Assembly (NCBI GenBank): GCA_965235115.1
Contig: OZ249437.1
Location: forward strand, 15,500,001 to 15,564,000
Source: Laetmonice hystrix
Taxonomy: Eukaryota
Length of the DNA stretch: 64,000 nt
Reading direction: 5' to 3'
Position 1 is the first letter of the stretch. Each line of letters begins with the position of its first letter. This document shows positions 18,877 to 48,400 of this stretch, piece by piece. A model generated the notes under the pieces. That model was not told the DNA's origin, made no database searches, and saw only the letters and a program-made list of their open reading frames with translations. The position numbers and the translations under genes are program-made.

Positions 18877-21800
18877 ATGACGTCTCGGAAACTGTCGCTG
18901 GTTGTTGCTGCATGTAATAATAGAGGGATAGGTGTCAATGGGACGCTTCCCTGGCGACTGAGGTTTGTACTACGACGGGAGACTCGGAAATCGGGGACCT
19001 GCCAAGGGGGTGGGGCGATAATAGGGGCGATGAGCCTAGTAGTAGTGGCAGTAGTAGTAACTGATGTCTACCCTTTGTACCCATCGCGCATGTACGCATA
19101 CCCTAACTTCACGCACTTCCCCGTGTGTGCACCCACCCTGTTGCCGGGTGGATATCTTTGCTTTGCCACATGAATTCTTTATTCGTTTTTCCAACTGACA
19201 ATCTCTAAACTAATTTAGTCAGCTGCTGTCGAATTTTGTTCAGCATGATCTCGCCCTAGTCTAGACGTGGACACCCTTAACAGCTTCGCGTTAAGGATGT
19301 GGGACAAGCCATAGAGAATTTACCAAATGCGTGGGTTGGCTCGGTTTCAACGCCAATTTCAAACCCCTGTCGCGATGTCTACTTACAATAAAATGCCCAT
19401 GTTAATTTGTATAGTGTTCGCTAGGATCTTGGTCAAGGAATTGTCTATTCCGAAGGTGATTTTGACTTGTCAGGCCTTTTGTTGTAAGTTCAGTCCAACT
19501 TATTAAAACTCTCCATCGCCATTCGGCATCCGGGATAACATGAATCAGCTGGTTCCGGTTCCATTTGCACATGCGCAGTACCGACAGACAACAATGGCGG
19601 ACAGGAACGAATCTTCGATTTGCTTCGATTGAGGGTATAAAAACGGCCGTAATATATTACAGAAGGAGCGCATTACTTCCTGAACTGTGCGCTACACGTC
19701 GTCAGATGTAAATGGAAGTAATCATGTATTCGTAGAGATATGAATCGGTGCCATTTCTTTATTTGAAGGGATTTTGCAAATTCTCTATGACGATTCCAAC
19801 GACCCTAACACGCTAGTGTATAGGGGAGAGTCAACGGCTAGATCTCGCCCCTGACAAATGCCATCAAATCAGTCTTCACAAGCTCCCTCGGCCTCGCCAT
19901 AGGAAAAGCATTTCTAACGTCACAATGCTGAATTAATTCAGAAAGGATGCTCAATTTATAGCAGAATGGGGAGGCACTGAGAAATTAGGACATGATAACA
20001 AAAATCACACTGAGGTGGGAAATTTCTGTGTTGATAAAAATCGGGCAAATACAGGGGTGAGGGTGCACCCCCCTTTCATTAAAAAAAGACTTGCACCCAT
20101 ACTTTGTGCAGCGCACAGTTCACCACTCAGACCCTACCCCCCCTTTCCACCCCTCATATCCCCCATTCCAAAATCCTGAATTTGTCCCTGTTTTGTTCAT
20201 TGGGAACAAAGGATAACATGGAGTTAACAAGGGTCAAGGCTAAAGCTGGCTACACAGATGAGTGTGTGAACAGAACCATTCATGTAAATGAGGGCTTGTA
20301 ACACCTTCAGAACCTGTCAGCCATTAGCCATTGTGCCGTTGTTGTCTCAACTTGATTTGACAGGTCACACCTTGGCGACAATAGGTGAGAGCCAACTGAT
20401 GCGCCGGGTGGCCAGAGTGATGGGTTGGAAGGCCATTTGGGACTGACAAAAAGTGGTCAAAATGCGGGGTGGTCGTAATAGAAGCGGCCGCTATTGGGGG
20501 TTTTTGACAAACATTAAATAGAGGGAAAAAATTCAGGACTGAGCCAAACTGGCCGTAATTAAGGGTTGACCGCTTTACTGAGGTGGCCGTTAAGTGGGGT
20601 GCAACTGTATATTGCATTGCCTTGTCCAGGGGTGGCATTTGGAGTCGACCGAGGCGACAGAATTCGAGCTCAGGTGACTAGACATTCACAGAATACATGC
20701 CCGGTTGGCGAGTAACATATTCTGGGGATGGGCCTACTTACCAGGTCTGACTGGGGCTAATTTATTGCAAAACAGATCTGGGCATCTGACGTTTCCATGA
20801 TGTGGGCAGGGAAGTGCCCACGCTGGGCAGCGCCCTTCTCATCTCATCTGATGATGTAACAGTGTGTACATATTCTCATACCGTCTCTTGTTCATTCATA
20901 CCAAGGCGCTAATGGCCCCCACCCCCACCCCTTGCCAACTGAAAACCTTGTGCCTTCGATGCTAGTGCAAAACTACCGCCCAGCACATCCCTGTGTGGGC
21001 TAGTAATTTTTCATCCAGGCTAGTTGATTTTTTACTTTACTAGCCCGGCTGGCTAGTAAACTAAAAAGCTTATCCCTTGTATGACCAGGCTACATTTGGT
21101 TTGCTTATGTCATTTCTAAGGCCCATACATTATTATGTCCTTTTGAGCAAGGTTTCAGCCTTCCGGGAAATATCCAATAAGTTGGGAAAATAAGTAAACA
21201 TTATTGTGATAAATATGCATACCGGTACATTTACCAGCAGTTAGAAAGATACCAGAGTGCTGTAACTGTCTTCGAATATGTATGAGTGCCAGTGTTCCAG
21301 CTATTTTGGCGTATGCTGCGTATCGGCCTGAGACACTATACACTAGGTTTCAGCCCCAATACATGACCAAAATGACTGATATGTTGTTCTTTAGGGCTGA
21401 TACGTGATAAAAATTACCAACATGCTATAAAATGTAGAAGGGTTATGTTAGCTATGATGAAAACCAGTCGTGAGGAAGTGATAGAGCCTCAGAAAGTTCA
21501 CCAGCTTGCACCAGTTTTAACATGCTTACGGGATGCCAGGAGAAGAAACCTGGTCCGCATCCTCCAATTACCTGCCTGGTACTAACAAATTACCTGCCTA
21601 GTACTAACAAATTACCTGCCTAGTACTAACAAATTACCTGCCTAGTACTAACAAATTACCTGCCTAGTACTTATTAACAAATTACCTGCCTCAGGGTTTC
21701 ATACAGAGGGGGGGACGGGGGGGATTTATCCCCCCCCATGATTGGGACATGAGGGGGATATCCCCCCCCCCCCATCAATCTGCAGAGCAGTGTTTTTTTT

Positions 21801-24800
21801 TAAAGGTATCTGAACATAGTTTTAACGTCGACAACGAAATGTCTATGAATAATCCTGACAATCCTCCCTTCTGATGTCGAATAATATTGTAATGATGCAT
21901 TTATTTAAAACCTTTGTATGATTCTGTTTGCTGTCACTGCCAATTTTGTGTTTTTGGGCGTAAAAATTGTGGATTTTTTGGTGGTCGATTTAGTGAAGAT
22001 TCTCGCTCTGAGAGGCCAGGAAAACGCATCTCTGGAGTTCCTGAAAAAAAAATTCTGGGGGAGGGCTCCCAGACCCCCCGTTCCGGCCCGCCTTCGGCGG
22101 GCTCGCCCGTCCCCCTCATTAATTATTTTCTGGCGGAAACCCTGCTAGTACTAACAAATTACCTGCCTAGTACTAACAAATTACCTGCTGAGTACTATCA
22201 AATTACCTGCCTAGTACTAACAAATTACCTGCCGAGTACTATCAAATTACCTGCCTAGTACTAACAAATTACCTGCTGAGTACTATCAAATTACCTGCCT
22301 AGTACTAACAAATTACCTGCCGAGTACTATCAAATTACCTGCCTAGTACTAACAAATTACCTGCTGAGTACTATCAAATTACCTGCCTAGTACTAACAAA
22401 TTACCTGCCTAGTACTAACTGGCAGTTACCCCAACACTGCGATTTGCTTCGAGCTAGAACACCTCAGTCATTTAGTGTTATGGCCATGGGAGAGAATGTT
22501 TGCCTAATCCATGTAAGTTCCAGGAACCAGAAGATATGAAAGTTAATTGGCACAAAGTTCTTATTATCATTTTGTGTCTAGCATACTTTTTGTTCAAGGG
22601 AAATATTTATAATATAATTTGTAATAAGAACATGTGAAATTTGGATTTCAGAGGTGACATGGCGTTTTTCAAAAGGATCACCTCCGAGACAAAGAACCCA
22701 GGTGAGACTTGCCATCTCAGAACCTTCTTCAAACACTTTCAACAATGCCACAATCACATTATAGTTGGGATGGCTTCTTTGGTGTGCTTTGAGTGAATCT
22801 GTAAGAATTTGTTTGGGTGGCCAAACCACTGAATGGCAGTGTGGTAACTGTGGTTACAAAGAAACAGATTCAGGTTTTCAATGATAATTTCTTTCCCCCT
22901 AAGATTTCTTGATAAATAACATTAAGGTGTTCAGACTTTAAACAATTGACAATAACGGTATTTCTCTGACTTCAGAGCTACAAAATGCTGTCATTATGGG
23001 AAGGAGGACATGGGAGTCCATCCCAAAGGCACACCGCCCTCTAGCAAACAGACTAAACATCATCATCAGTCGGACATGGCAGTAAGATTGCATAGATTTC
23101 TGCACTGAATTATGTTGTAATCATTTCCTTGTACTGAGGGTATGTCTTTGTGAACAGAAATACCTGATATACTCATGTCTAGTGTATAGTATTGAATAAT
23201 TGTGAGGACTGTAACAATTACAGATTATTTGAAATGTTCCCAAGATCTGTTTTTCTTTCCTTCAGAGAGTCACCAGAGGGGTCGTACCTGGTCCGGAGTC
23301 TGGACGAAGCGATTGAGCTTTGTATGACAGGGGTACTCTCCTCCAAAGTGGAAACCCTTTTTATTATTGGTGGCAGTTCCATATATGATGTAAGTAGAAA
23401 CACTTTGCCAGTTGGATGCTTTAAACGTCAGCTAAAATTTGTCTGCTAAAGAATTTTTGATATTGCTGCCAAATGCCTTGCTGTGCAGAGCTTTAAGAAA
23501 TGTAAAAAAAAAATCTGCTTGTCCACCTGATCCTACAAAAATACAAATTCGACTTTGTACATAAAGTTTTTAACTCCAGAGTACAGGTTGACTGGCAATA
23601 CTTGTAAATGTTGATGAAGAAGTGCTCCTGACTTTTTAATACAAGTTCTGGCAGATTCCATGATTAAAATGGAGGTTGTCACTGCTGTATGAGGCAGAGA
23701 TTCAATAACAATAGGATGGCTCTCATGTTTCATAGGACTCTCTATCTGTTAGTATAGAGGTCAGGAGAACTGCTAATTAAAGTATCACCTTAAAATGTCT
23801 TTAAAATGTCCCTGCAGATGGCGTTTGCTTCCCCAGACTGTCACCGGATCTACCTGACCCAAGTTATGGGAGAGTTTGAGTGCGATACATTCATGCCTGA
23901 ATTTGATAAAACAGTTTTCAAGAAAGTCCAGTAAGTTTCAACCGTTTATTTCTTACTGATAATTCATGTTCTCATCACAAATGTACCTGACCCCGTCACA
24001 GGGCTCGAATTAAGCCACGGCACCGACGGCAAGTGTCATGGTTGAACTCCCCACTTGCTGTAGTCCCCTGATTATATAGACGATGTCCACGGCAAGAAAA
24101 TGCCATGGCTGCCCCACCTGGTTTGCCTGTGTGCCTTTCCCATAAATTCCATAAAATTTCTGCTAAAGTGCTTAGACCCAAGGCAACACTTGCCATGCCC
24201 TAAAAAAATTAAAATTCAAGCCCTGCCGTCACCCTGAGCCTTTGTTACTAATTGGTTGGACCAGCCCCGCTGGCTGTAAAATGTGAGTTTATATGGTTGC
24301 AGCTGCAAAATGTTCTGAGACACAGTAGAGTAGTGCCACACTAAGTACTGTACTTTGATATTTTTTTGGTTAAGTACCTCTGAATGCTACCTAGTGTGGG
24401 TATTTTTTAGCTACTATAATCCCCCATGCATAAGCCACTTTTTTTTATCATCAAATTTTTTTCTGAAAATCTAGGGCAAGTAGTTGGGCCAGAATAAGTT
24501 GTCATGATGATTTGACTCAATGTGCACACCTTCAACTGTTTTGTATCTCAATAGATATATTTTAAACTGAAGACTACAGAGGTACGATCAGTTTGTTTGC
24601 TCAGTTGTTGTAGCTATATGTTAAACATGCTTTAAAATGACTTACAAAAATCAGCCAATAGATGTTAATGCAGTGTTTCATTGCACAAAATATGTTACTC
24701 CTTTGTTTACAGTTATAAATGTGTGTGCGTAAAGAATCAAAGAGAACCTGGATAAGTTTTACTGTTCAGTATAATCATCGATCTTCACGAAGAAAAACAG

Positions 24801-26856
24801 ACAGAAAAAATAACAAGTGGAAAGAGATAGGGCTATTATATAGATCTGTGTCATTAATCTTTATGCCTAATGTATGGTCCTTTGAAGTGGGCCATTAGCA
24901 GTTTTGAAAGCTTCATAACTTTCAGAATAAAAAATGGCATATTATGATATCTTGCCCTAATGGTATAAATCGTCAGATATTTTGAGTAGGACTTTAAGAG
25001 AGGGTGATATCTGAACAGGATGAAGTGGTGGTTACGAGTGTTGTCTTATTGCACCAGGTTCTTGTGGCTATCAACAAAACACATCGCTACTTCTGTAGAG
25101 TTTCAACATATGGATGCCGACTGCCGATAGTCTACCTAGTATTTAAGGTACAATCTCTAGGATACAGGCATGGCTTTAGGTGTTATGAGATAGCCTTTTG
25201 CACCTCATAAAGAAATATAGAATATTCAGAATTAATGAAAATAGTGTCTCGCAAGGGAAGGGGTTACAAGCATCTTGGCTGGTTACAGAAAAACAAGCAC
25301 TGATGTACGCATAGTGCGTACAGGAACGGCAGGGTAATGGTAAACCCAACAAGTCACTTTTTGTTGATAAAGTTTGACTGATATTTTTAAATTTACCAAT
25401 GTTTAGTACAATATAAGTCAAACAGATGACAAACGGGCGTCACAGCCCTTTGCTGCTCTGTATCTGGTGAACTCCTGACCAAACAGATGACAAACAGGCA
25501 TCACAGCCCGTGCTGGTCTGTATCTGGTGAAGTCCTGACCAAACAGATGACAAACAGGTGTCGATCACGGCCCGTGCTGGTCTGTATCTGGTGAAGTTCT
25601 AACCAAACAGATGACAAACAGGTGTCGATCACGGCCCGTGCTGGTCTGTATCTGGTGAAGTCCTGACCAAACAGATGACAAACAGGTGTCGATCACGGCC
25701 CGTGCTGGTCTGTATCTGGTGAAGTCCTGACCAAACAGATGACAAACAGGTGTCTATACGGCCCGTGCTGGTCTGTATCTGGTGAAGTCCTGACCAAACA
25801 GATGACAAACGGGCGTCACGGCCCGTGCTGGTCTGTATCTGGTGAAGTCCTGACCAAACAGATGACAAACGGGCGTCACGGCCCGTGCTGGTCTGTATCT
25901 GGTGAAGTCCTGACCAAACAGATGACAAACGCGCGTCACGGCCCGTGCTGGTCTGTATCTGGTGAAGTCCTGACCAAACAGATGACAAACGGGCGTCACG
26001 GCCCGTGCTGGTCTGTATCTGGTGAAGTCCTGACCAAACAGATGACAAACAGGCATCACAACCCGTGCTGGTCTGTATCTGGTGAAGTCCTGACCAAACA
26101 GATGACAAACAGGCATCACAACCCGTGCTGGTCTGTATCTGGTGAAGTCCTGACCAAACAGATGACAAACAGGCATCACAACCCGTGCTGGTCTGTATCT
26201 GATGAAGCCCTGACCAGACAGATGACAAACGCGCGTCACGGCCCGTGCTGGTCTGTATCTGATGAAGCCCTGACCAGACAGATGACAAACGCGCGTCACG
26301 GCCCATGCTGGTCTCTGGTGAAGTTCTAACCAAACAGATGACAAACGCGCGTCACGGCCCGTGCTGGTCTGTGTATCTGGTGAAGTCTGAGGATGATTTT
26401 GCAGTGTCGCAGACATTTGACACAAAACGATGATTTTTCAGTATCCCAGTCATTTGACATGGAACGTATCTCTGAACAGCTGGGGCCCGTTTTACTAAAG
26501 AGTCGAAAATAACGACGTCGAAAATTTAACATAGAAGTGGATGGGTTGCTAGGTTGAAAATAACGACCTAGCAACCATTCACTTCTATGTTAAATTTTCG
26601 ACGTCGTTATTTTCGACCTTTAGTAAAACCGGCCCCTGCATTGTTACATGGAAGAAATATGTGTATTTCGTGTACTGCTTGTAAACTTGAAAGGTAGAAA
26701 ATTAAACTTGATTGTGTCCCTAAAATTTGTCCTTGATATTGTTGTTGCAGACTTGATGGTATCGACCCGGAGATACAGACAGAGAATGAGATAGAGTACC
26801 AGTACGAAGTGTATGAAAAGGTAGATGTCAATCCAGAGGTGGAGGCCTGTAGATGA
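18877..26856 (+). CDS. DHFR: Dihydrofolate reductase, canonical copy (194 aa, six exons)
   Basis: Exons 18877-18962, 22652-22701, 22976-23081, 23266-23389, 23818-23930, 26751-26856, all GT-AG with consistent phase. Motifs [58 protein letters not shown]. Exon sizes 86/50/106 match the vertebrate DHFR layout. Confidence 0.96.
21567..22418. repeat. 22-bp minisatellite (ttacctgcctagtactaacaaa) interrupted by a MITE
   Basis: Blocks at about 21567-21691 and 22145-22418, in DHFR intron 1. Confidence 0.9.
21692..22144. mobile_element. Non-autonomous DNA transposon with CAGGGTTTC TIRs inserted in the 22-bp array
   Basis: CAGGGTTTC...GAAACCCTG termini; comparison with the uninterrupted repeat unit indicates a 2-bp CT duplication. 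Confidence 0.7.
23999..24225. mobile_element. hAT-like MITE with 6-bp TSD
   Basis: TIRs CAGGGCTCGAATT / AATTCAAGCCCTG; CCGTCA duplicated at 23993-23998 and 24226-24231. Confidence 0.8.
25419..26385. repeat. 60-bp minisatellite, about 16 copies, in DHFR intron 5
   Basis: Unit aaacagatgacaaacgggcgtcacggcccgtgctggtctgtatctggtgaagtcctgacc with homogenised sub-blocks of variants. Confidence 0.92.
26483..26635. mobile_element. 153-bp almost fully palindromic Harbinger-like MITE
   Basis: Termini GGGCCCGTTTTACTAAAG / CTTTAGTAAAACCGGCCC; CTG TSD at 26480-26482 and 26636-26638; arms are complementary almost to the centre. Confidence 0.85.
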
Positions 26857-29800
26857 TTGGACGCTGGTCTGACCTTGAGCTGGGGGAGACGGGGTGGCCA
26901 GGATTATCTTTAGTCCCACAGTGGGGATTTTGGAATGAATCTTGGATTTTAATAATTTAACCTTTTTCGAAATCCCAAGAAAATCAAAACCAGAACAATA
27001 TTGGCAGACATCATGTTTGGACAAGATGTCAGGATCAAAAGTATATAAATATCCTGTCAACATTTTTGGAAGGTTTAGGCGTTTTGGGACTTGCAGCCAC
27101 ACATCCACCCTACCCCTAGCTTCCGGCTACGGGTCTGCTGATAATGTCATTCCAAAATACATTGGTAGTTAGATTCAAGCGCTCTTTGAAACTGTGTTAT
27201 TGCAGCGTGTAGGTAAGTTGAGTTAGGGATTACCAGCGGTATAGAGAATCGAGCTCTGATTTAATGAATGAATACTCAAAGGGAAACCGAATCAAACTTA
27301 TCGTGCAAGAAGTAGTTCCCAAACATTTTAAAACTTTTACAAGAAAAAGATCCCTTTACTTTCCCAGCCTTGGGAACAAAGACTCAGGCTATTGTCAATT
27401 TACTTCACACAATGTACGTATGTACTTTATGAAATACCTCTTGGAGTAGCAGGGATGCTGGCACTTTGATTTCTTCAGTCCTTAGAAAATTTGATGTTTT
27501 ACTTCTTCCTTATGGATCATGCAGTGGCCACGATCTCGTGTGTGTATGACTTAAGGCTTACAAATGAACAGAATCCATAATAAATAGTAAAAATATATAT
27601 CGTTAGCTTTCATGTTACCATGCCAATCCATTGGATACACAGTCTAAAACTACATCAAAGGTCAGAAAGACGTGTTTATCTTCCCACAATTCCAATATTT
27701 ACTTTTTGTTCGTCTGTATATAGTAGTCCTCTGTTAGCTGCTACTGATGGAGGAAACTTTTAGGACGAGACAGAGTGATTGTAAGTGATAGAGTTTGAGC
27801 AGACATACGTATTGTTGTCTAGTGTTCATTTTACCAGCATGTTAGTTCTAAGTACGTACATATTATGGCATGCAGTAATTCACTATTTTTATGCGCACAT
27901 ATCGCTGTCGACAAATTCTGTTGTTATTTTTGGTTGCAATAAATGCTGGCGTCTAGTGTTAGTTATTCTATAACGGTGTTGTGTTGTGTGTGTCAGCTTT
28001 CACAGTTTCTGACTTGGACTAAAAGACATGGTACTATTGGATCATATTTTGAGACTTTATGTATAGGATCGTATGTTGAAGCTAAGCAGGAATGCGGTGA
28101 CCGACGAGGACACCGACACTTTAACTTTATACATTAATTTTCATGGATATTTTCACGGTACTGGAAATATCACCTCGGAGAAAATATTACCACCACGGTT
28201 AAATTATTATTACTGTGAAAATATCGATGAAAATCAATCTAGAACGTTTAAAACACTAAGGTCTATGTCCCTATGGGCTGACGTAGCTGTGCTTAGCTTA
28301 AAGCTTGCTGCTTAGAGCCTTTCTGAAATCGGGACCTGATATGTGTGAGACCTTCTTCTTTTTACCAGATGACATTACAATCAAATGATGGCCCCACAGT
28401 TCTGCAGTAGTCCGAGAAAAAACAATTATTTTGAATAAGTAAGGACAGAGTACCGGGGCATTGGAAAGTTCGGGAAAATCATACGATGTTTAAGATTAGA
28501 ATAAATCCTGTCATTTCGGTGAAAGAAGTGTGAATTGTAATTTCGCAATTTTTCAAAAATACGCCGAGTTACAACAGGAGAGATGAGCTGTGCTCAGGTG
28601 AGAGACAATGTAATCTTGTTTTCTTTTTCCCATATCATGGAAAAATGCCTTTTACGTTCAACTAATCAATCGGAAGAACGCTTCCACGGCAAATACTAGT
28701 ATGATGAGGGATTTAAGAGCGTTTTAATTTATGTCGCTTTTAGAATTCACACAAGGCACTGTGTATTCTGCCCAAAGAAAAGTTTCGTCCTATATAGGAC
28801 AGCGCCTATAGATGTTAGTCCGCCTGCCATAGATTTATGTTCTGACGGCAATTCCTCAATAAATTCGTCATTCTGATCCGGTGGAAAAGGCGTAAAGAGA
28901 AGCGTGGACAATAAACCATTTCCCAGTGTGGTCGCAGTGTTTGAGAATGGGCCGAGAGCTCTGGGAAGTGCTACTCCAGTAACAGTGTTTGGTTGGCATT
29001 GAAGCGATTCCATTGCTTTCTTAATCGAACTGAGTGCTTCCATTCAGCGAAAATGATAATGCTGTATACACTGTACATGTACGTGGAATACTCCCAAGTT
29101 GAAGAGGTATCTACAGGAGCGGGGTTTACCAGACAACATAATTATAAAAAGGCAACTTCTAAAAGGTTTTGTTCAGTGTCACTGTCAGCGTACAGAACCT
29201 CAATGTCGACCAAGAGTAGGCCTGATATGAATGTGACAAATCATGCGGTTGATCGTATTAAGGATCCAATGTGAGTTTTTTTTAACCCTATATTAGCTAA
29301 AGTATTTAAAGACGATCTCCTTGGTGCCCCATCGAAAGTACGCGATAATTTTTTGTGTATTTGAGTACACACGCGCTGCTTGCCTCCCAGACCGCGACGG
29401 CTGCAATTCTTGGAAATAGTCTTGAGTAATCTAATGACCCAAGGCTGTATACGTTAACAAAAGGCTGAAGGGTAGGGTTTGCCTTTACTCTGGGGTAGGA
29501 AAGTGAACTACTCAAGTACCGGTCGTTGTGTGTGTAAAGTCTCCGCTGAGTTAGGCCACGACACATTCACTGGAAAGCTTAATTGAAGCGAAGCGCTCGA
29601 TGCTGTATTGAAAAACAGGAAACATATTTTGAAACACTAATTCAAGATTAATTAAATTAAAATATTATCCTTTTATATAAAATGGAATTGATACAACACT
29701 GAAAAACGGGACGTTTGCGTACATACATTGTTCCTGGATTGCGGGTAACGATAGCGTCCATCGCAGTCTGGAGGTCTACATTTGTTTAGTTTGATATCTT

Positions 29801-30539
29801 ATAGGCTCCTATAAAATTAATATGGGCGCCATGCACACTTAATTCCTAAGATCGGTAACGGAATAATGAAATCCTGCTATAAGTATTTGATCAACAGATT
29901 GTGTATACATGGGCGCTGTCGTTATTTTACGTTACTCGCCAAAAGATCATATTTAAATACATTCACGAGGCTGAGGGCCTAAATTGAGGGTCACGTGACA
30001 CCAGGTTTTAATTGTATGGACTATAGTGGGGCCTTGAATCAAAGTATGAACAGTAGACTTTCATTTCCGTCCGAGGTGTGACCCAGATACGACAGGTGTG
30101 TGTATACATGCCATTACTTCATGAATAGATTCTTCGTTAGTGGACCCTGATTATCACATGGGTGGGACCGTGGCTAGTGTAACTTGGTATTTCTCCCCTG
30201 GCATTGCGTGCTCGGGAATACCTCATTAAATCTCGTACTCTATGCTGTCAGCAGTGGTATCGCGAGCTGAATCTCTCCATCTTTCTTACCAATTTGTCTT
30301 CAAACTATTCCAAGAATAGGGATATACCCGATATCTGTCATTTGACTGCATCAGGTGGAAATCTTTTGGTGTAGACACTAGAAGTAAAAACTAACTTTTC
30401 CTTTAAACTGGTGTAGGTTAATGGTACAAGCAGAAAAACAAGAGTGAATATGAAAATAATAAAATGGGAGTTGGCAAAACAATCTAATGTAACCTACGAG
30501 CGGTGAAAAAACGCGCTTACAAGCTGTTGAATGGGACTA

Positions 30540-30615
30540 GGTGGGTGGATGGGTATTTGGGGCTTTACGCCTTGCAACAGCCCGGGTCATATCGCTTTCT
30601 TGGTGGAGGAAACTT
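30540..30615 (-). mobile_element. Truncated 3' fragment of the same SINE family as 38070-38340
   Basis: gtgggtggatgggtatttggggctttacgccttgcaacagcccgggtcatatc...ttcttggtggaggaaac matches the tail of the full copy. Confidence 0.75.
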
Positions 30616-30937
30616 GGGCTTTGAAATGTAACACATGGGCATATTTCTTTTTTTAAATATTTTTTATTAACCATATTTAACCAGGATTACCCACAGCCAC
30701 CCGGCTCTTCATACCGGGTCATGTAGGGTCCTGGGGTAGAAATACGACAAAAATATTTACATTTAAAATGAATCCAAATTCATATCCGCAATACAACTGT
30801 ACATACAGAGTAGTAATACAAAGCAAACTTAAAACAAACCATGTGCACCAGCATCCATTTGACATTGTAGCGATTATTTTACAATCAGCCGGAAGGTATT
30901 CATCGGTACTGACGGCAGGTGTTTGTTTGACTTCCAG

Positions 30938-33900
30938 GACCAAGGCGGCACGTCTGATAACGCAATCCGTCCATTTAACGTCGTGGCCGCCATGTTGGAG
31001 GACCGTGGTATCGGCTTTAAAAACACCCTGCCCTGGCCCTCCCTCAGGTAGGCATCAGGTCACCCTGCCCTGGCCCTCCCTCAGGTAGGCATCAGACACC
31101 CTGCCCTGGCCCTCCCTCAGGTAGGCATCAGGTCACCCTGCCCTGGCCCTCCCTCAGGTAGGCATCAGGTCACCCTGCCCTGGCCCTCCCTCAGGTAGGC
31201 ATCAGACACCTGGCCCTCCCTGCGGTAGGCATCAGGTCACCCCGCCCTGGCCCTACCTGCGGTAGGCATCAGACACCCTGCCCTGGCCCTCCCTCAGGTA
31301 GGCATCAGGTCACCCTGCCCTGGCCATCCCTGAGGTAGGCATCAGGTCACCCCGCCCTGGCCCTCCCTGCGGTAGGCATCAGACACCCTGCCCTGGCCCT
31401 CCCTCAGGTAGGCATCAGGTCACCCTGCCCTGGCCCTCCCTGCGGTAGGCATCAGATACCCTGCCCTGGCCCTCCCTGCGGTAGGCATCAGACACCCCGC
31501 CCTGTCCCTCCCTCAGGTAGGCATCAGGCACCCCGCCCTGTCCCTCCCTCAGGTAGGCATCAGACACCCTGCCCTGTCCCTCCCTCAGGTAGGCATCAGG
31601 TCACCCTGCCCTGGCCCTCCCAGAGGTAGGCATCAGGTCACCCTGCCCTGGCCCTCCCAGAGGTAGGCATCAGGTCACCCTGCCCTGGCCCTCCCTGCGG
31701 TAGGCATCAGGTCACCTTGCCCTGGCCCTCCCTGCGGTAGGCATCAGGTCACCTTGCCCTGGCCCTCCCTCAGGTAGGGATCAGGCACCCCGCTCTGGCC
31801 CTCCTTGAGGTAGGCATCAGGTCACCCCGCTCTGGCCCTCCTTGAGGTAGGCATCAGGCACCCCGCCCTGGCCCTCCCTGAGGTAGGCATCAGGTCACCC
31901 CACCCTGGCCCTCCCTCAGGTAGGCATCAGGCACCCCGCCCTGTCCCTGGGGGGTGCGGTGCCTCCGAATTGAGCATCCGGCGCTTGTGTCCATCTCTGT
32001 CCAATTTGTGAGGAGCAAGGGGAATATGTAGTCTTCCTTTTTTTCTGGGGGAGGGGGGTAGAAGATATTGACAGTCGCTCCCCGAGTAACTGCAGGGGCA
32101 TTAATTGCCCACAGTGGCAGGCGAAATGAATAAAGTATCTCCACGTCTTTGAGCACGTCTGTTTGAGGGTATTTCTCTACAGTCTTTGATGGTGTTAATC
32201 ATGATGGATTGTTTGATCGATGGCACAACGCCGTCAGTCTCTGAGTCAGGGACGCCGTCAGTCTCTGAGTCAGGGACGCGGTCAGTCTCTGAGTCAGGGA
32301 CGCGGTCAGTCTCCGAGTCAGGGACGCCATCAGTCTCCGAGTCAGGGACGCCGTCAGTCTCCGAGTCAGGGACGCCGTCAGTCTCCGAGTCAGGGACGCC
32401 GTCAGTCTCCGAGTCAGGGACGCCGTCAGTCTCTGAGTCAGGGACGCCGTCAGTCTGAGTCTCTGAGTCAGGGACGCCGTCAGTCTCCGAGTCAGGGACG
32501 CCGTCAGTCTCCGAGTCAGGGACGCCGTCAGTCTCCGAGTCAGGGACGCCGTCAGTCTGAGTCTCTGAGTCAGGGACGCCATCAGTCTCTGAGTCAGGGA
32601 CGCCGTCAGTCTCTGAGTCAGGGACGCCGTCAGTCTCTGAGTCAGGGACGCCGTCAGTCTCCGAGTCAGGGACGCCGTCAGTCTCTGAGTCAGGGACGCC
32701 GTCAGTCTCTGAGTCAGGGACGCCGTCAGTCTCTGAGTCAGGGACGCCGTCAGTCTGAGTCTCTGAGTCAGGGACGCCGCCGTCAGTCTCTGAGTCAGGG
32801 ACGCCGTCAGTCTCCGAGTCAGGGACGCCGTCAGTCTCCGAGTCAGGGACGCCGTCAGTCTCTGAGTCAGGGACGCCGTCAGTCTGAGTCTCTGAGTCAG
32901 GGACGCCGTCAGTCTCCGAGTCAGGGACGCCGTCAGTCTCCGAGTCAGGGACGCCGTCAGTCTCCGAGTCAGGGACGCCGTCAGTCTCTGAGTCAGGGAC
33001 GCCGTCAGTCTGAGTCTCTGAGTCAGGGACGCCGTCAGTCTGAGTCAGGGACGCCGTCAGTCTGAGTCTCTGAGTCAGGGACGCCGTCAGTCTCTGAGTC
33101 AGGGACGCCGTCAGTCTGAGTCTCTGAGTCAGGGACGCCGTCAGTCTCTGAGTCAGGGACGCCGTCAGTCTCCGAGTCAGGGACGCCGTCAGTCTCTGAG
33201 TCAGGGACGCCGTCAGTCTGAGTCTCTGAGTCAGGGACGCCGTCAGTCTCCGAGTCAGGGACGCCGTCAGTCTCCGAGTCAGGGACGCCGTCAGTCTCCG
33301 AGTTAGGGACGCCGTCAGTCTCTGAGTCAGGGACGCCGTCAGTCTGAGTCTCTGAGTCAGGGACGCCATCAGTCTCTGAGTCAGGGACGCCGTCAGTCTG
33401 AGTCTCTGAGTCAGGGACGCCGTCAGTCTCCGAGTCAGGGACGCCGTCAGTCTCCGAGTCAGGGACGCCGTCAGTCTCTGAGTCAGGGACGCCGTCAGTC
33501 TCTGAGTCAGGGACGCCGTCAGTCTCTGAGTCAGGGACGCGGTCAGTCTCTGAGTCAGGGACGCGGTCAGTCTCTGAGTCAGGGACGCCGTCAGTCTCCG
33601 AGTCAGGGACGCCGTCAGTCTCTGGGTCAGGGACGCCGTCAGTCTCCGAGTCAGGGACGCCGTCAGTCTGAGTCTCTGAGTCAGGGACGCCGTCAGTCTC
33701 CGAGTCAGGGACGCCGTCAGTCTCTGAGTCAGGGACGCCGTCAGTCTGAGTCTCTAAGTCAGGGACGCCGTCAGTCTGAGTCTCTGAGTCAGGGACGCCG
33801 TCAGTCTGAGTCTCTAAGTCAGGGACGCCGTCAGTCTCTGAGTCAGGGACGCCGTCAGTCTCTGAGTCAGGGACGCCGTCAGTCTCTGAGTCAGGGACGC

Positions 33901-36900
33901 CGTCAATCGCTGAGTCAGGGACGCCGTCAGTCTCTGAGTCAGGGACGCGGTCAGTCTCTGAGTCAGGGACGCCGTCAGTCTCTGAGTCAGGGACGCCGTC
34001 AGTCTCCGAGTCAGAGACGCCGTCAATCTCCGAGTCAGAGACGCCGTCAGTCTGAGTCTCTGAGTCAGGGACGCCGCCGTCAGTCTCTGAGTCAGGGGCG
34101 CCGTCAGTCTCCGAGTCAGGGACGCCGTCAGTCTCCGAGTCGAGGACGCCGTCAGTCTCCGAGTCGAGGACGCCGTCAGTCTCCGAGTCGAGGACGCCGT
34201 CAGTCTCCGAGTCGAGGACGCCGTCAGTCTCCGAGTCGAGGACGCCGTCAGTCTCTGAGTAGAGGACGCCGTCAGTCTGAGTCTCTGAGTCAGGAACGCC
34301 GTCAGTCTCTGAGTCGGGAACGCCGTCAGTCTCTGAGTCAGGGACGCCGTCAGTCTGAGTCTCTGAGTCAGGGACGCCGTCAGTCTCCGAGTCAGGGACG
34401 CCGTCAGTCTCCGAGTCAGGGACGCCGTCAGTCTCCGAGTCAGGGACGCCGTCAGTCTGAGTCTCTGAGTCAGGGACGCCGTCAGTCTCTGAGTCAGGGA
34501 CGCCGTCAGTCTCGAGTCAGGGACGCCGTCAGTCTCCGAGTCAGGGACGCCGTCAGTCTCCGAGTCAGGGACGCCGTCAGTCTCCGAGTCAGGGACGCCG
34601 TCAGTCTCGAGTCAGGGACGCCGTCAGTCTCTGAGTCAGGGACGCCGTCAGTCTCTGAGTCAGGGACGCCGTCAGTCTCTGAGTCAGGGACGCCGTCAGT
34701 CTCTGAGTCAGGGACGCCGTCAGTCTCTGAGTCAGGGACGCCGTCAGTCTCTGAGTCAGGGACGCCGTCAGTCTGAGTCTCTGAGTCAGGGACGCCGTCA
34801 GTGTCTGAGTCAGGGACGCCGTCAGTCTCTGAGTCAGGGACGCCGTCAATCGCTGAGTCAGGGACGCCGTCAGTCTCTGAGTCAGGGACGCCGTCAGTCT
34901 GAGTCTCTAAGTCAGGGACGCCGTCAGTCTCTGAGTCAGGGACGCTGTCAGTCTCTGACTCAGGGACGCCGTCAGTCTCTGGGAGGGAGGGAGGGAGGGA
35001 GGGAGGGAGGGGGAGGGGAGGGAGGGAGGGAGGGACTTCACGACATCGTGGAATTTTAATTTAATCGTTGAGTATAAGGGATAAATTACAAACAATGCTG
35101 GTAACTTATAACGTGTGTGGTTTGAATACGGCTTAAGCCGCTTTCACATGCACACGGTTTGCGGCGTGCGGCGTGCGGCGTGCGGCGTGCGGCGTGCGGC
35201 GTGCGGCGTGCGGCGTGCGGCGTGCGGCGTGCGGTGTGCGTTTTTGCAGAATTGGAACAACTGAAAATATATATAACCGTTCACATGCCCGCGGTTTGCG
35301 GTGTGCGGCGATTTACATTGGCTACATTATTAAAACGCACGCCGCATGCCGCACGCCGCACACCGTATGCATGTGAAAGCGGCTTAAGAGGCTGCACGTT
35401 TCTTCCAGACGTGACTACCAACATTACATCAAACTTACGAGTACCTCGAACCAACCAGGTAGGTTGACGTACGCAATCGGTTCCATCCTATACCTGTTCT
35501 AACGGAATATCAAAAAGGGAAAAGAAGTGGCTGCTTTTTGTTGTTGAGGTCTTGGATCGGAGGTGGATTTGGTTTTAGGCGAGCAACAGTGATCAAATTG
35601 TAATTCTGTCCACCAATTTTCATATTTCATAGGATGCTACATTGGAGGACCTAATTGTCTTAAGGAATACTAATATTTTAAAGGGGCCCGAACCCGCTCA
35701 TTGGAAAACGAAAACATTACTTTGAGACATTTGTATTCGTTTAAAACCGTTTCAGCCTTGTTTGTGTAAATCAAAACTCGTTGCTTGCCGTGATTGCATT
35801 CCTTCATACTTGTTACAAATATAATTTCACTGTTATGGCAACCTAATCAGACTAAGATGCGGTTAATAACACCAATAACTGCATAAATTCATTGATTTGA
35901 TTGGGTTATTCTTAGCTGGGTTACAGACAACCCCTATCGTTAGAAGAAGTAAGGCAGTATGTTTTTGTGGGATGATGGGCATATGTCATATGTTTCATTA
36001 GTTATTAGGGAAAGTTTGAAAACTTCGTCAAGTCAAGGGTCATTAAAGTAGGATTATACCACAATATTTCTAAGGAACCGACCATAATTATCAGGGAAAA
36101 CAGCGATGAAATCTTTAGGACCTGTTGATGTTTTGTATTTGCTCTAAAATGTCATGCGATTGGTAGAAAATTCGCGCGATTTCCGATAATCTGAAATGAA
36201 CTAGGATCGCGCGGCCTAGACGAAGTCTACCGTGAGACATGTGTAAAGTTTTCTGTGCAGGTCGGAAGTGTGTCAACATTAAGGGTCGGCTGACGTGGGA
36301 GAGTACTTGTTTGGAGGAAAAGTCCAATCCGAACATTATCAACATTGTCATCTCAGGAACGCTCAGGTACTCCTTCCGGTACGGTCACAGTCACAGCTGG
36401 GTGCTGACCGATTATCTTCAGGGATTTTTTAGAAGAGAGAATAAATTTACACACGTTTCTGGAACAAGGACAGCGCTGTACTTTTTTTCTGGTCCTTATC
36501 AAACAACAATATACATCATGCATGTAGATTACTTTTTCTTTTTACACCGACCACCTATTGTTAGGGTCTGAGAAATTATTTGTAGGGGTAGATCTACGAG
36601 AAAACATATTGCCACCTCCCAGGTGATTGTAGAGAAGGGCCATATTTACGACAAGGCGCCCGCTGGAGGCAATCTTACGCTGTAAATTGCCCTATTAAGA
36701 CAGGCTGAAGGGGGACACAGGCTTACATAATATAAAGTTTCGTTCCTGCAGCCAACCACCAGAGTACGTCCATCACGTGGTGCGAGATTTGACGTCAGCA
36801 CTTCGGATAGCGTCAGACCCTTCCCTCGGTGACGTCATTGGTGACGTCTGGGTCATGGGGGGTCAACAGGTTTACGAGGTAACTTATCCCTGACTCCGAT

Positions 36901-38798
36901 ACCAATATTTTGGCTACACTTACAAATGCTCCGTAGTCTATATTCCAAAAATCGATTATTCTACAACCATAACGTGCTGGTATAGTTGCACTTAAAGTCC
37001 ATAATGGCACGAATATTGATCTAGACTCGAGATGAGCTTATTTTGGGAAGATAGGTCTATCTGAGAGGATACAGGGGTTTCTTAACGGTAGATCGATGTA
37101 ATTGGTCAGTAATTATTTTGACCAACCACCACAGTTTAGGGGTTGTTCACAAGTAGGCCTAGTCCTTAGTTGCCGTCCCTGTAAGCTATTAGGTAGATCC
37201 ATACTGCCCTCCCAAGAGAGACAGAAAAATAATGTGAAATAGAGAAAATCGACCCTAAAGTTTATCCCTCAGCCATATTAAATTATATTTGGACCACCTA
37301 AGTAGCTATGGCATATAATGTATATGCCATAACAACAATTTGAGTCGTTTAAATACTTTAATCTTGCCGAGGGATAAGCTTTAGCGTTGATTTTCTCAAT
37401 TTCACAGTTTTGTAGATACTGCAATCTCCCTAGGGAGGGCAGCATAGCACACCCACCATTCGGTGCCTCTGTATACATAGTGTTTAAAAGTAGGCAGTTG
37501 GGCCCTTGCCTTGGCTCAGATTGCAGTGGCGTCGTAAATCTATAAAAGCCCTGAAGGCTTCATGGATTTTTTTTTATATATCCCTTGTTTCACTGTCTAG
37601 AGATTAAAGATTTAGATATATCCTGTGGCACTCCATACAGTGTCGCCTGAAATATCATTTTGATCTACAGTAATCAGTTTATTGGGCGGATATTATGAGT
37701 TGTACATTCGTCTTCAGGATGCTGTGAGGTCGCCACACTGTGAGCGGATTTACCTCACACGAATCCAGGCTCTGTTTCCATGTGATGCTTTCTTCCCCGC
37801 AATAGAGGAGAACTTTCACGTAATCAGGCAAGTAATCCTGAAATTTGATGTTTCTAAATATCTCAGGTGTTATGCGTGAGTAGCTCAATACTGTGAGTGT
37901 GTGAGAAACTTTTTTTCATAATCTTACTTCAACACACAAATCGAATTGCAATATGAAAGACATCCGACAGTGCAATCAACATTTGATACACGCTGTTTTC
38001 CTTTGGTTGAAACAGTGTGATTGTGATTTATATTGGATGGTATTGCGGCCAAGAATTACCGCGCCTGTGGGTGGGTGGGTGGGTATTTGGGGTTTTACGC
38101 CTTGCAACAGCCAGGGTCATATCACGGCGGTGAAGATGAGATGAAAGTCAGTTTTTCTTGGTGGAGGAAACCGGAGTACCCGGAGGAAACCACCGACCTT
38201 CGGGAAGGAACTGACTGACAAACCTTTCACACATGCAGCCCAGGCCGGGAATCGAACCCGGGTCGCAGCGGTGTGAGGCGATGGTCCTAGGTGTCATGAT
38301 GGAGCCGACACCTTAGACCACTCGGCCACCCGAGGCCCCGACCGCGCCTGTGAATATAGGCCTATAATAAAATTATTTAACCAAACAAATACCAAGAAGT
38401 CAACGTTTGTTTGGCCTTATACTGTGTCCCTTGAAGCTTGAACCACCTTGTTGTTATTAAATTCGTCGAAAAGTTACCTTTTATCCTTGGCACCACCATG
38501 TTAAAATTTCATGTTAGAACGATGAGTGAAAATATAGAAAAATAAATAAATACGAGGATAAGGAAAGTAGATCTAGTGCGTGCATTAGTCGGATGCAGGG
38601 GAATATTTTAAATATGGTGTTGTTGAGGATAAAATAACTGGAGGAAGTTAACATGCCGCTTTAATGTTGTAATGATTTATTCTCATTTTCAGTGATCCGG
38701 ATATCGAATCGGCGGTTCTTGAGGACAACGGAATTCAATACAAGTTTGAGGTGTACGGCCGAAACGCCGCCCAATCATCGGTTCGTGGCGCCACCTGA
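30938..38798 (+). CDS. Divergent DHFR-family paralog (intact; start codon in an unlocated upstream exon)
   Basis: Exons 30938-31047, 35409-35458, 36261-36366, 36752-36878, 37718-37827 (GC donor CAG|GCAAGT), 38693-38798; 202 codons with no stop or frameshift and the same intron phases as DHFR. Motifs FNVVAAM...GIGFKNTLPWPSLRRDY, KGRLTWES, WVMGGQQVY, IYLTRI...CDAFFP, YKFEVY. A candidate start exon ATGAGCTGTGCTCAG|GTGAGA (28583-28597) is unverified. Confidence 0.88.
31024..31946 (+). repeat. 35-37-bp minisatellite made from the paralog's exon end plus splice donor, about 25 copies
   Basis: Unit caccctgccctggccctccctcag|gtaggcatcaggt; the first copy is the true exon end (TLPWPSLR). Confidence 0.92.
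32228..34980. repeat. 24-bp minisatellite (with 30-bp variants), about 2.75 kb
   Basis: Unit acgccgtcagtct(c/ct)gagtcaggg, with a sporadic 6-bp gagtct duplication; followed by (GGGA)n at 34981-35033. Confidence 0.95.
35137..35383. mobile_element. MITE with TTAA (or TA) TSD and internal (GCGGCGT)n
   Basis: TTAA|GCCGCTTTCACATGCA ... TGCATGTGAAAGCGGC|TTAA; it ends 25 nt before the acceptor at 35408. Confidence 0.8.
38070..38340 (-). mobile_element. Full-length tRNA-derived SINE (V/Meta-type core, tentative)
   Basis: Minus strand: A box gtggccgagtggt, B box ggttcgattccc, core ggtggtttcctccgggtactccggtttcctccacc, (ACCC)n tail; 12-bp TSD ACCGCGCCTGTG at 38058-38069 and 38341-38352. Confidence 0.9.
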
Positions 38799-39514
38799 CG
38801 GATTGTGTCAGTCATAAATATACGCCACATTAGTCGTTCAGGAAGGGGGCAGTTATGTTCTGGTGAAACCAAAAACTTATAGGGCCACAAATCAGCCTGT
38901 GATTATTGAAAGGTTCAACCTATCTGCAGTAGGCCTAGTACAGGCGTTCAAACGAATGCAGCCGTGAACCCTTCAACGTAGCCTAATTCAGCCAGTCTAA
39001 GCGCGGTATGGATGGCTGTAGGCCTATCACCAATTACAATTTAGCCATCTGTGCCAGTCGTTTGAAGGTTTATTATTAGTGGGGGGGGGGGGGGGGGGGC
39101 AAAATTGTAAGGTTTTACAACATATTCTATGAAGCTAAAGGCAGGTTTTCCCCAGTTCCCCTGTCCGGTCTCGTATTAGGCTACATGTCGAGAGGTCTAG
39201 ATCTAGGCCTATAGGCCTAGGCCTACTTAGGCCTAATTCTGTTCTACACAAACTGTGACAAGTTCAATAAAAAAAAAAGCTATTTATACCTACTCCGTTT
39301 CCTGGTTCGGAAATTAGTGTGTAAGTAGACAGTAGTAAAATGATTTAATCTTATTTTTACTGACCCGAATACTGAGTCAGACATGCTCTGGGAGAACGTC
39401 AATATCAAGTCGACTGACGAACGCCGACTGAGGGTGCACGCGTGGCTCCATCTGACGGGAGAAGCTGTAAATTAGGTGCATCAAATTTTCTTCAGTTTTT
39501 AGACCAAAGCGGTG

Positions 39515-45489: not shown

Positions 45490-48400
45490 TTAGCCTTGTA
45501 ATAACTGCGCCGCGTCCCAGAGGGCAGCACCAGTCGTGGTGGACAGAAAGAACACTCGTTGAGCATCCTCCTTGGAGGCGACGAAATCTTCGATGGCAAA
45601 TCGTCCTATAGTGTTCGCCCGTGATAGATCTAACCAGACTGCTAGCGCCTCCTGTGGGCAGGCCGAGGTCAGTACTGCCTTGATCTCCTGCTCCCCAGGG
45701 CCCCACAGCATGAACTGACACATCATATGTGCCTTTATTATCGTCTGGATGGTGTTCTCCTCCAGTACCATGGCCACCTTATTGAGGCCCCTGGAGTAGC
45801 GCGTCTGTGACGGTATGGTCCCCCGTCGTGGTGCGGCCTTAGAGTCCTGAATCAGATATAGTATCAAGTCCCGAAGCTGTGCCACGAAGGACCCACGCTT
45901 GACACTCTTGGCGGTGATATGACAGTGATGTGGCAGAACGAGCACGTAGTTCTCTTGGAGTCCGCTAGGTGTCACCCCGAGCACCTCGTTGGTCTGGAAG
46001 CAGCGCGGGGTGCAGCCCTGGTCGAGAAGGTAGAGGATTGCACTCAGTGTTTGCTGGAGTACCGTACAGAGGGCGCGGTGGTAGACTGGAGGTTTGATAG
46101 CATACAGACCCCGCAGGGCCATGCAGTGGTCCTCTAGAGTACACACACTGGCGAACGGTAGCACCCAGACTGTGGTTGGGACCATACCACACGGTCCGTA
46201 CACGTGAGGATCCGACATCTTGGATACGTCAGGAAAATACGATGATGACACATGGTCCTGGTAGAGGGCGCTGGGGTGGAGGACCCCGACGTGAGGCTGA
46301 GGAGGGACGTCGGTTGGCAGAGGACGAACACTTATCTAAAACCGGGACGGTACACAGTTAACCACGGAATGTAAAACTTACCACGCTGGTTAGGATTGTA
46401 GACTGGGTCAGATATACATGAAAAATTCCTGCATCTGTTGTACATATTAACAAACATAACATTTCTATATAGTTACTTTCACCTGGTTCTATAAACAAAT
46501 AACCTTTTTGACGGTCAGCTCATTTACTACGTCCTCATCACTGCAGATACATGATTGTTTACAAAGAAAATAATATAAGTAAATTTATCAAGACCAGAAA
46601 AATGCTGAAGAAATTAAAAAAAATTGTAAAAAGCTTGACTTACCATGAGCATACAATCCCGAATGCTGAGTTTGTTAGTGGAGACCCGGTAGTAGGCCAT
46701 ACCCTCGTGTGAATACACAGGGGTCTCACTCTCCAGGCTGAAGTCTGACCACCGCAGTAGTGTAGGCGAGGCTGGGGCTCGGACAAACATCGAATCGACG
46801 GCCTCCCTGATCTGTAGGAGAGTCATCATCTGCATCCCAGTCAGTCTCTCCCAGCCGTCAGGTAGTGTGAACCCGAGCCCGCCTGGCTCAGCCCCCAGCT
46901 CGTCATTAGTGTACATGACCACGTACGAACTGCTACAACCGGCTGGTCGTGGGGACAGTTTCCGCCGTGGGATAGGTTTCGGTCGCCAGTCGCCAGTGTC
47001 GATGTCCAGGTTGGTTTCATTGGTACAGGCCCCGCCCAGGTTCATGAGGAGCGGGTGGGTGTCCAGCAGCGGGTCGTCACTGCCGGGACCGCCAGGGCAA
47101 CCCCCGCACACGTGGTCCGGGGAATGGTCGTGGAGTACAGGCGCCAGGTAGTCGGAGCTCGTCGTCATGACGTTCGGATTGCTAGGCTCAGCTGCTGACG
47201 CTAACGACGCCGACGATGACGACACAGGACTCTTGAGGACGACAGTGGTCTTGCTCTGTGCCGAGGACGAGCTCGTGGATGTCTGGTCAGAGGGTGTGTC
47301 AGCGAACATGTCATCATCATCCTCCACGTCCTCGTACGGCGTGGTGGATCGTTCCCGCCGGTCCCGGCCAAGGAGGGCACTCACCGGGTCGAGCACCCGG
47401 GCTGTCCCGGCCGGGTGCCCGGCGGGGTGTCCAGGGGACAGCCCGGAGGGAGCGTCCCCTGGCTCCTCGTCATCATCAGGAGAAACTGTCTCGTATACAT
47501 TCTCTGGGTGGAACTCCTCCTCCTGTACTGGAGGCGGAGACGGCAGCTTGCGGGAGGAAAACTTGCTACCACTCAGCTCCATGGAGAGGTTAGTCAGCGT
47601 GTCGTGTTCTGTACCAACAAAATACAATCACTCAAGTTTCAGGATTATCAGCCGCTTAGATTAATTTACTGCAGATTACTGGATACAACTAAAAGCCCCT
47701 CCTATGTTTGTTCCCAGTGGAAAAGCACTTTCAAAAAAGGCTTCAGCTCAGATACAGCAAAATTATCTTATTCAGAGAATGGGAGGGACTCACTGAGAAC
47801 GGTGTTGATGAGCTCGACGTCACAGGACATCCCCTCAGAGAGGGTTTTAGACCGGAACTGTCGCCCCTTGGGTCTCTGCGCCTGCCGACCCGTGGGAACT
47901 TCCTTGAAGCTGGTGGTAGGTCGGGGCAGGGTCTGAGTCTTCATACGAACCTCCTCCGGGGTGAAGGAGGACAGAGGTCGGGGGGTACCGTTCGGGGGGG
48001 ACTGGAGGTCGGCACCGCCCGAGAGACGCCTACCGCCATCTGGTGGCGGCGGAGGGGCACTAGCTGGTTTCCGACGCTGGCCTTTCGCTGAAACCACAGT
48101 GAAATGACACAATTCTAATTCGACGCCATTTCGGATTCTCACAATACTTACCAGAAATTGTAAAATACAAATCTACTTTCGGAAAGAAATTATATTAATA
48201 TATATAACTGCCTGTGTCTCCACACGCTCTGACGCATAAAAATTGGTTTCACCAAGCGTTATAGGCAAGTCATTCATATTGTTCCTTTGAAATTTGTCTC
48301 AGTGCAAATTGTGCTTATATTACCAGGTGAACCCTCTACATTATGACTGGCATAGTGAATTACAGGTTAGGCTCCTTGAACCTCAGTTCCACATAATGAA

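Follow-up and report, generated by a model that had tools for sequence, protein, structure and literature searches.

The 64,000-nucleotide stretch of Laetmonice hystrix DNA analysed here (assembly GCA_965235115.1, contig OZ249437.1, positions 15,500,001 to 15,564,000 of the forward strand; hereafter the window, whose own numbering is used throughout) carries a canonical dihydrofolate reductase (DHFR) gene, whose product we call D1, followed by a second, divergent DHFR-like product at 30938-38798, which we call D2. On balance the stretch is best explained as a two-domain DHFR-D2 locus of annelids and molluscs, in which D2 would form the C-terminal half of a fusion with D1. D2 keeps the catalytic and cofactor-binding residues of DHFR, and the residues that hold the folate tail have been replaced. 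Few enzymes and drug targets have been studied as intensively as DHFR, which textbooks describe in animals as a single, small, monomeric protein.

Organisation of the tandem locus

Both coding regions lie on the forward strand, D1 being 4 kb upstream of D2. The D1 gene (18877-26856) has its own ATG and encodes 194 residues; its exons (18877-18962, 22652-22701, 22976-23081, 23266-23389, 23818-23930 and 26751-26856) are separated by introns that are all of the GT-AG type, and they give matches to the family PF00186. D2 is encoded by six open exons whose joined frame of 609 nt comprises 202 codons and a TGA. Exon 1 (30938-31047) starts in phase 0 at an acceptor, ttccag/ (the slash marks the cut), and encodes a linker and strand A through Pro-Trp-Pro-Ser-Leu. 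Exon 2 (35409-35458) carries Asp30, Tyr31, Tyr34 and Ile35. Exon 3 (36261-36366), the counterpart of the folate-tail-binding region of canonical DHFR, carries Lys52, Gly53-Arg54, Thr56, Glu64, Ile70 and Ser76-Gly77. Trp113, Met115, Gly116-Gly117 and Tyr121 are found in exon 4 (36752-36878) and Thr136 in exon 5 (37718-37827), which ends at a GC donor, AG/GCAAGT; exon 6 (38693-38798) closes with the stop codon TGA at 38796-38798. Six exons within exactly these limits had been proposed in an initial annotation made from the sequence alone, and their phases match those of the canonical copy, with D2/D1 sizes for exons 2-6 of 50/50, 106/106, 127/124, 110/113 and 106/106 nt. The two products of the window are 33% identical, and a scan of the whole genome found no match to PF00186 other than D1 and D2.

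A one-residue deletion after Trp24 (giving Pro-Trp-Arg-Leu) is present in the D1 of the window (18940-18962) and of three related loci, L006, L008 and L010. D2 retains the vertebrate-length Pro-Trp-Pro-x-Leu after Trp24, and in this respect is the more ancestral-looking copy.

Residues kept and replaced in D2

Mouse DHFR residues 3-77 can be aligned to a scallop ortholog of D2 without a gap, with good alignment continuing past this span, and window D2 aligns without gaps to the scallop ortholog over residues 3-77; because both alignments are gap-free, vertebrate numbering can be transferred to window D2. On this basis every residue call of the initial annotation proved right. The residues kept are A9, G15-I16-G17, L22-P23-W24, D30, G53-R54, T56, S59, S76, G116-G117, Y121 and T136, and the changes are F31Y, F34Y, Q35I, N48C, V50N, M52K, I60T, P61C, R65K, P66S, L67N, R70I and R77G. 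The neighbouring D1 retains M52, S-I-P (with I60 and P61), R-P-L and R70, again as first described.

The catalytic network (an acidic residue 30, T136, W24, L22 and Y121) is present in the window and in all 11 members of the D2 clade described below, the one exception being an Ile at position 22 in L008. The motifs that bind reduced nicotinamide adenine dinucleotide phosphate (NADPH), namely G15-x-G17, G53-[KR]54-x-T56, S76 and G116-G117, are all found in window D2 and are invariant or conservatively kept across the clade. The same is true of the pterin-head set (A9, L22, W24, acidic 30, aromatic 31 and 34, Y121 and T136), which in DHFR enzymology holds and protonates the pterin ring.

The tail-binding region is altered in every member of the clade, as the initial annotation had claimed for the window. 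Arg70 (E. coli Arg57), which in folate-reducing DHFR binds the alpha-carboxylate of the glutamate, is Ile in the window and I, V, C, S, L or T across the clade, never a basic residue. The wall of the p-aminobenzoyl site (I60, P61, L67, Q35 and N64) reads T60, C61, N67, I35 and E64 in the window; in every clade member the S-I-P motif is lost, position 35 is hydrophobic, and both Leu67 and Asn64 are replaced. Two of the new residues are fixed in D2: Lys52, which is Met in all D1, and Glu64, which is Phe or His in D1 and Asn in vertebrates. Window D2 has all the hallmarks of its clade (K52, E64, W113, a non-basic residue 70 and an I-K-G-R-x-T motif). D2 belongs to the DHFR fold family but is missing Arg70 and the p-aminobenzoyl wall, two of the features that define a DHFR able to reduce folate. 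The R77G change, which had been tied to cofactor preference, is not a feature of the clade: position 77 is Gly in the window, varies among its relatives and is still Arg in scallops. Positions 118-119 vary too.

Relatives and evolution of D2

Relatives were found by a full-library search with D2 exon 4, followed by a profile search. They comprise a Paralvinella palmiformis protein (KAK2164111.1, 379 aa), models from Argopecten irradians, Pecten maximus and Ylistrum balloti (350-381 aa), a Mizuhopecten yessoensis isoform with a different N-terminus (P0139, 221 aa), two Joint Genome Institute (JGI) proteins (374 and 359 aa), two stand-alone D2 proteins of 188-190 aa (P0140 and P0141, from intron-free contigs and with their own ATG), and exon-sized fragments from the animal contigs L008 and L009; full gene models were built for L008. 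The resulting D2 clade of 11 sequences represents one annelid, four scallops and uncultured animals. In public databases the D2 orthologs are labelled only 'dihydrofolate reductase-like', 'uncharacterized' or 'hypothetical'.

In a maximum-likelihood tree, an analysis suggested in the initial annotation, the 11 D2 sequences were recovered as one clade (support 99/97), with a prawn DHFR and the D1 sequences of these species falling outside it. Since this clade spans an annelid and molluscs and stands apart from D1, the duplication predates the annelid-mollusc split. Of the 25 positions at which the other ten D2 sequences show no variation, window D2 keeps every one, where several relatives miss one to three, and together with its place in the clade this bears out the original view that it is not a pseudogene. 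With a length of 0.44, its terminal branch is shorter than those of L008 (0.68) and Paralvinella D2 (0.77). A dN/dS test had also been suggested; comparison of the window with L008 gives a number of non-synonymous substitutions per site (dN) of 0.46 in D2 and 0.33 in D1, no ratio being computable because the synonymous value (dS) is saturated. D2 evolves modestly faster than a housekeeping enzyme, no more.

Variation was assessed by comparing DNA contigs from three DNA runs of one sample with window positions 35300-38900, excluding the multi-copy repeat. Of 32 differences, one falls within the 499 exonic bases, where about five would be expected, and it is synonymous (GCG>GCC); all eight insertions or deletions are intronic. 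This sparing of exons gives weak support for constraint, coming as it does from a single sample that is maybe the assembly's own source.

Matches of single D2 exons to PF00186 are weak: exon 5 gives 22 bits (E = 1.5e-4), and the genome scan shows one hit. In the orthologous proteins D2 appears as a second PF00186 stretch, and its E-values against mouse, chicken and human DHFR are about 1e-30 (E = 6e-31 for scallop D2 against mouse DHFR). A search of solved structures with D2 exon 3 alone matched nothing, single exons being too short or too diverged, and a profile built from phage DHFR and the window exons returned only phage and bacterial DHFRs. The D2 half of the Paralvinella protein, searched against proteins of 107-340 aa, a length range outside which the fusions fall, found only bacterial DHFR beside thyA. 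A look-up of a stand-alone D2 in the ESM Atlas gave generic DHFR clusters only.

A lungfish protein labelled 'dihydrofolate reductase-like' (Protopterus annectens XP_043943525.1, P0132) lacks Arg70 (Cys), has Cys52 and Ser56, and keeps the I-P and P-L motifs. It joins the D2 clade weakly (83/71) on a long branch. Its exon-4 motif, P-D-H-A-H-F ... I-W-I-V-G-G, is shared by seven exon-sized animal fragments (P0122, P0124, P0125, P0127, P0128, P0130 and P0131), and sequences of this type may represent a separate divergent DHFR-like lineage in vertebrates.

A putative D1-D2 fusion

A candidate internal 5' splice site is found in the last exon of D1 (26815-26826, forward strand; GAAAAG/GTAGAT, cut after 26820 in phase 0), directly after a conserved Tyr-Glu-Lys and 36 nt before the D1 stop codon. 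When the donor at 26820 is joined to the acceptor at 30938, both being in phase 0, a single open frame of 385 codons results. Two AATAAA motifs, at 27579 and 27938, lie in the spacer that would become the intron of the fused form (26857-30937, 4.1 kb) and could serve a form comprising D1 only.

The same arrangement recurs in relatives. In the Argopecten genome (L010) the last D1 exon reads Tyr-Asp-Lys and then GTAGATAATTAA; the annotated Argopecten model cuts this at AAG/GTAGAT and joins it to an acceptor 13 kb downstream, just before the first exon of D2. The window donor, AAG/GTAGAT at 26820/26821, is identical to this fusion donor, and its counterparts are AAA/GTATAA in Paralvinella and AAG/GTACAG in L008. 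All four genomic loci (the window, L006, L008 and L010) share the layout of D1 upstream on the same strand, a donor after Tyr-Glu/Asp-Lys and a phase-0 acceptor before D2. The 350-381 aa models of Argopecten, Pecten, Ylistrum and Paralvinella each consist of D1 followed by D2, with two PF00186 stretches. In two environmental contigs from JGI, L011 (1452 nt) and L013 (2598 nt), D1 and D2 are read in a single uninterrupted frame, with flanks resembling untranslated regions and with no introns; as all four genomic loci are intron-rich, these contigs are most simply explained as spliced mRNAs. No conserved coding block was found by tblastx or blastn between the window spacer and the spacers of L006, L008 and L010, a result that speaks against an overlooked first exon specific to D2. 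The window and L008 lack the in-frame ATG that scallops and Paralvinella retain immediately ahead of strand A. The first D2 exon of L008 begins at an acceptor containing an in-frame stop, and since in both of these genomes that exon has no ATG and opens at an acceptor, both rely on an upstream exon.

Several points weigh against this fusion. The internal donor at 26820 deviates from the consensus at positions +4 and +5, and the fusions seen in scallops and Paralvinella are products of computational gene prediction, which does merge tandem genes. Single-domain D2 forms that have an ATG of their own occur elsewhere (P0139, P0140 and P0141), so that fusion is not obligatory for the family. The decoy donors in intron 1 of D2, about 25 in number and described below, could drain productive splicing, and for L. 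hystrix itself the splice from D1 to D2, like the GC donor of exon 5, is read from genomic sequence. With these points taken together, fusion through the 26820 donor in this genome is nevertheless, in our judgement, quite probable.

D2 also exists as a single-domain protein, and fusion is not universal in the family. An example is L012, a 779-nt scaffold (ENA ERZ23489928) without introns that encodes D2 alone (190 aa), with an ATG to start it, upstream stop codons in all frames and an AATAAA near its end.

Start codon, splice sites and repeats

Ahead of strand A, exon 1 of D2 contains no in-frame ATG. A TGA at 30860 closes the frame on its upstream side; no ATG occurs from this stop to Met10, which is the only in-frame ATG, and a hypothetical start at Met10 would cut off strand A and A9. 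The scallop ATG, two codons before strand A, corresponds to CGT in the window. The initial annotation had taken D2 for a free-standing tandem paralog gene; with no start codon of its own, and on the comparative evidence above, it is better described as the probable C-terminal domain of a DHFR-D2 fusion. It had also been called intact, which holds for its six open exons and 202 codons but not for the missing start codon, the GC donor of exon 5 or the decoy donors of intron 1. We discounted trans-splicing of a spliced leader to the acceptor at 30938: the leader would not provide the missing start codon, and such trans-splicing is not known in annelids or molluscs.

Exon 5 of D2 requires the GC donor at 37827/37828. 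An alternative GT donor 4 nt downstream (after 37831) would place a TGA first in exon 6. The conserved motif N-G-I-x-Y-x-F-x-V-Y is carried by exon 6 in the phase of the GC donor, and L008 and Argopecten have a GT donor that matches this site in position and phase; evolution has therefore read the gene through the GC donor. The sequence AG/GCAAGT is the standard form of a functional GC donor.

Intron 1 of D2 is 4.4 kb long and consists mostly of two minisatellites. The first (31024-31948, forward strand) has 25.5 copies of a 37-nt unit made up of the last 24 nt of D2 exon 1 and its donor, and so places about 25 near-identical donors after the real one. Read-through beyond the first donor gives AGG TAG, and because this stop is reached at once only the first donor is productive. 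The second minisatellite (32228-34981, forward strand) is GC-rich, with about 110 copies of a 24-nt unit at 88% matches; it generates long spurious open reading frames on both strands.

A high-copy repeat occupies 37962-38560 in D2 intron 5, with a related copy near 30503-30660 and a contig word depth of 1e4-8e5, compared with about 40 in the flanks. The single-copy-depth contigs of all three DNA runs skip the 283 nt at 38058-38340, which either are an insertion missing from one allele or were collapsed in those contigs.

Predicted structure

An AlphaFold2 model of the Argopecten fusion was built on 11 sequences. Both domains have a predicted local distance difference test score (pLDDT) near 90, the linker (186-190) is below 50, and the predicted template modelling score (pTM) is 0.54. 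The D2 portion of the model (residues 195-375, pLDDT about 90) has its strands and helices in the same order as D1. The scallop fusion is thus predicted to comprise two well-folded DHFR folds joined by a flexible tether. Contact prediction between scallop D1 and D2 gave a score of 0.00, which counts neither for nor against contact between the domains.

Proposed mechanism and alternative explanations

We propose that the upstream gene would make ordinary DHFR (D1), and that the weak donor after Tyr-Glu-Lys would, in addition, be joined over the 4.1-kb spacer with the acceptor at 30938, which is in phase 0, giving a 385-residue D1-linker-D2 protein. The D2 start codon, kept by some relatives, would have been lost in this genome, leaving the fusion as probably the sole productive form of D2. 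D2 itself would be an NADPH-dependent reductase, or a ligand-binding domain, for a pterin-like compound without an anionic p-aminobenzoyl-glutamate tail, and would work alongside the folate-reducing D1. A changed substrate is a reasonable inference from the altered pocket. An NADPH-dependent reductase for a tail-less, pterin-like substrate would fit better than decay, because the pocket has been rebuilt to a new fixed state and the catalytic residues have been preserved over hundreds of millions of years; a tail-less substrate is also suggested because the fixed glutamate lies where the carboxylates of folate would be. The fuller proposal, of a two-domain enzyme older than the annelid-mollusc split whose D2 has as its substrate 7,8-dihydrobiopterin or a similar tail-less pterin, or another heterocycle, and whose pre-stop donor selects between plain DHFR and the two-domain form, is put forward tentatively. 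The suggestions of the initial annotation that D2 acts on dihydrobiopterin or pigments, is insensitive to antifolates or has a shifted cofactor preference are guesses.

A serious alternative, although one we consider rather improbable, is that D2 is translated and conserved but non-catalytic, a pseudo-enzyme that serves as an NADPH- or ligand-sensing or stabilising module to tune D1. Such a role would suit a domain that is often covalently linked to an active DHFR, whose tail pocket has been rebuilt, with K52 and E64 fixed, and not merely opened, and in which positions 118-119 and 77 vary. It is harder to reconcile with the acidic residue 30, T136, W24, L22, Y121, A9 and G116-G117, which are invariant or conservatively kept in 11 of 11 sequences and are hard to explain without hydride-transfer chemistry; the flexible linker and lack of fixed packing of D1 against D2 in the model (pTM 0.54) also count against it, as does the existence of stand-alone D2 forms. 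Those forms (the Mizuhopecten P0139 and the intron-free P0140 and P0141) lend some weight instead to an unlikely reading in which D2 is a free-standing paralog gene with its own promoter and a short, unrecognised, ATG-bearing first exon in the 4.1-kb spacer, spliced to 30938. The acceptor at 30938 shows the need for some upstream exon and nothing more. The spacer, however, holds no conserved coding block in tblastx comparisons with L006, L008 and L010, the position of the scallop ATG is CGT here, and the donor after Tyr-Glu-Lys is conserved in four of four genomic loci and leads into an open joined frame.

Very unlikely, in our view, is that D2 has recently been silenced in this species and is a relic no longer translated. 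The missing ATG, the GC donor of exon 5 and an intron 1 swamped by minisatellites with 25 decoy donors would all be in keeping with silencing. Yet the 202 codons remain open over six exons, the 25 clade-invariant residues are all kept, better than in several relatives, and the terminal branch is shorter than those of L008 and Paralvinella D2. The codons ahead of Met10 are conserved (F4, V6, V7, A8 and A9), which argues that they are translated; L008 is intact though it too has no ATG; the exon-5 donor has the standard form of a working GC donor; and variation within the sample avoids the exons. The two-domain locus with a D2 of changed substrate remains the reading that we prefer.

Comparison with known DHFR systems

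D2 resembles canonical animal DHFR (EC 1.5.1.3, PF00186; human and mouse) in fold, length, six-exon layout and intron phases. It differs in the clade-wide replacement of Arg70, Ile60-Pro61, Leu67, Gln35 and Asn64 and in the newly fixed Lys52 and Glu64, and the D2 of the window, which has no start codon, sits behind a complete DHFR. The scallop models and KAK2164111.1 are true orthologs, with the same tandem locus, the D2 hallmarks and a junction right after Tyr-Glu/Asp-Lys. The bifunctional DHFR-thymidylate synthase of protozoa and plants is similar in having DHFR as one domain of a linker-joined, two-domain polypeptide, but its partner is thymidylate synthase, which has a different fold and catalyses a neighbouring step of the folate cycle, whereas here the partner would be a second, diverged DHFR fold reached through a donor inside the last D1 exon.

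Human DHFR2 (DHFRL1) likewise represents a second DHFR-family gene in an animal genome. It is reported to be an intron-less young retrocopy that is 92% identical to DHFR (PMC10884974), whereas D2 is old, bears introns, shares 33% identity with its neighbour and has an altered pocket. The use of a DHFR fold with NADPH on a non-folate substrate has a parallel in SacH, reported as a bacterial DHFR-like reductase of safracin self-resistance (PMC10031226); SacH is bacterial, lies in a biosynthetic cluster and is related to D2 no more closely than at the family level. A full-text literature search found engineered DHFR-DHFR fusions, but no natural two-domain animal DHFR and no account of the scallop and Paralvinella models.

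D2 is a conserved second DHFR-fold domain with a rebuilt pocket that occurs in two large animal phyla, often fused behind the ordinary enzyme. If D2 is active on another pterin, it would constitute an extra step in invertebrate pterin and folate metabolism and a natural experiment on the re-specification of the DHFR pocket; if it is inactive, it would be a rare conserved pseudo-DHFR. A splice-site switch placed just before the stop codon would be a neat way to select between one-domain and two-domain products.

Other features of the window

Two further open frames lie on the reverse strand at 48367-51120 and 46614-47627. They encode 917 and 337 aa of low-complexity sequence rich in Pro, Ser and Gly, for which no significant Pfam match was found, and may be presumed to be exons of an adjacent gene that encodes a disordered protein.

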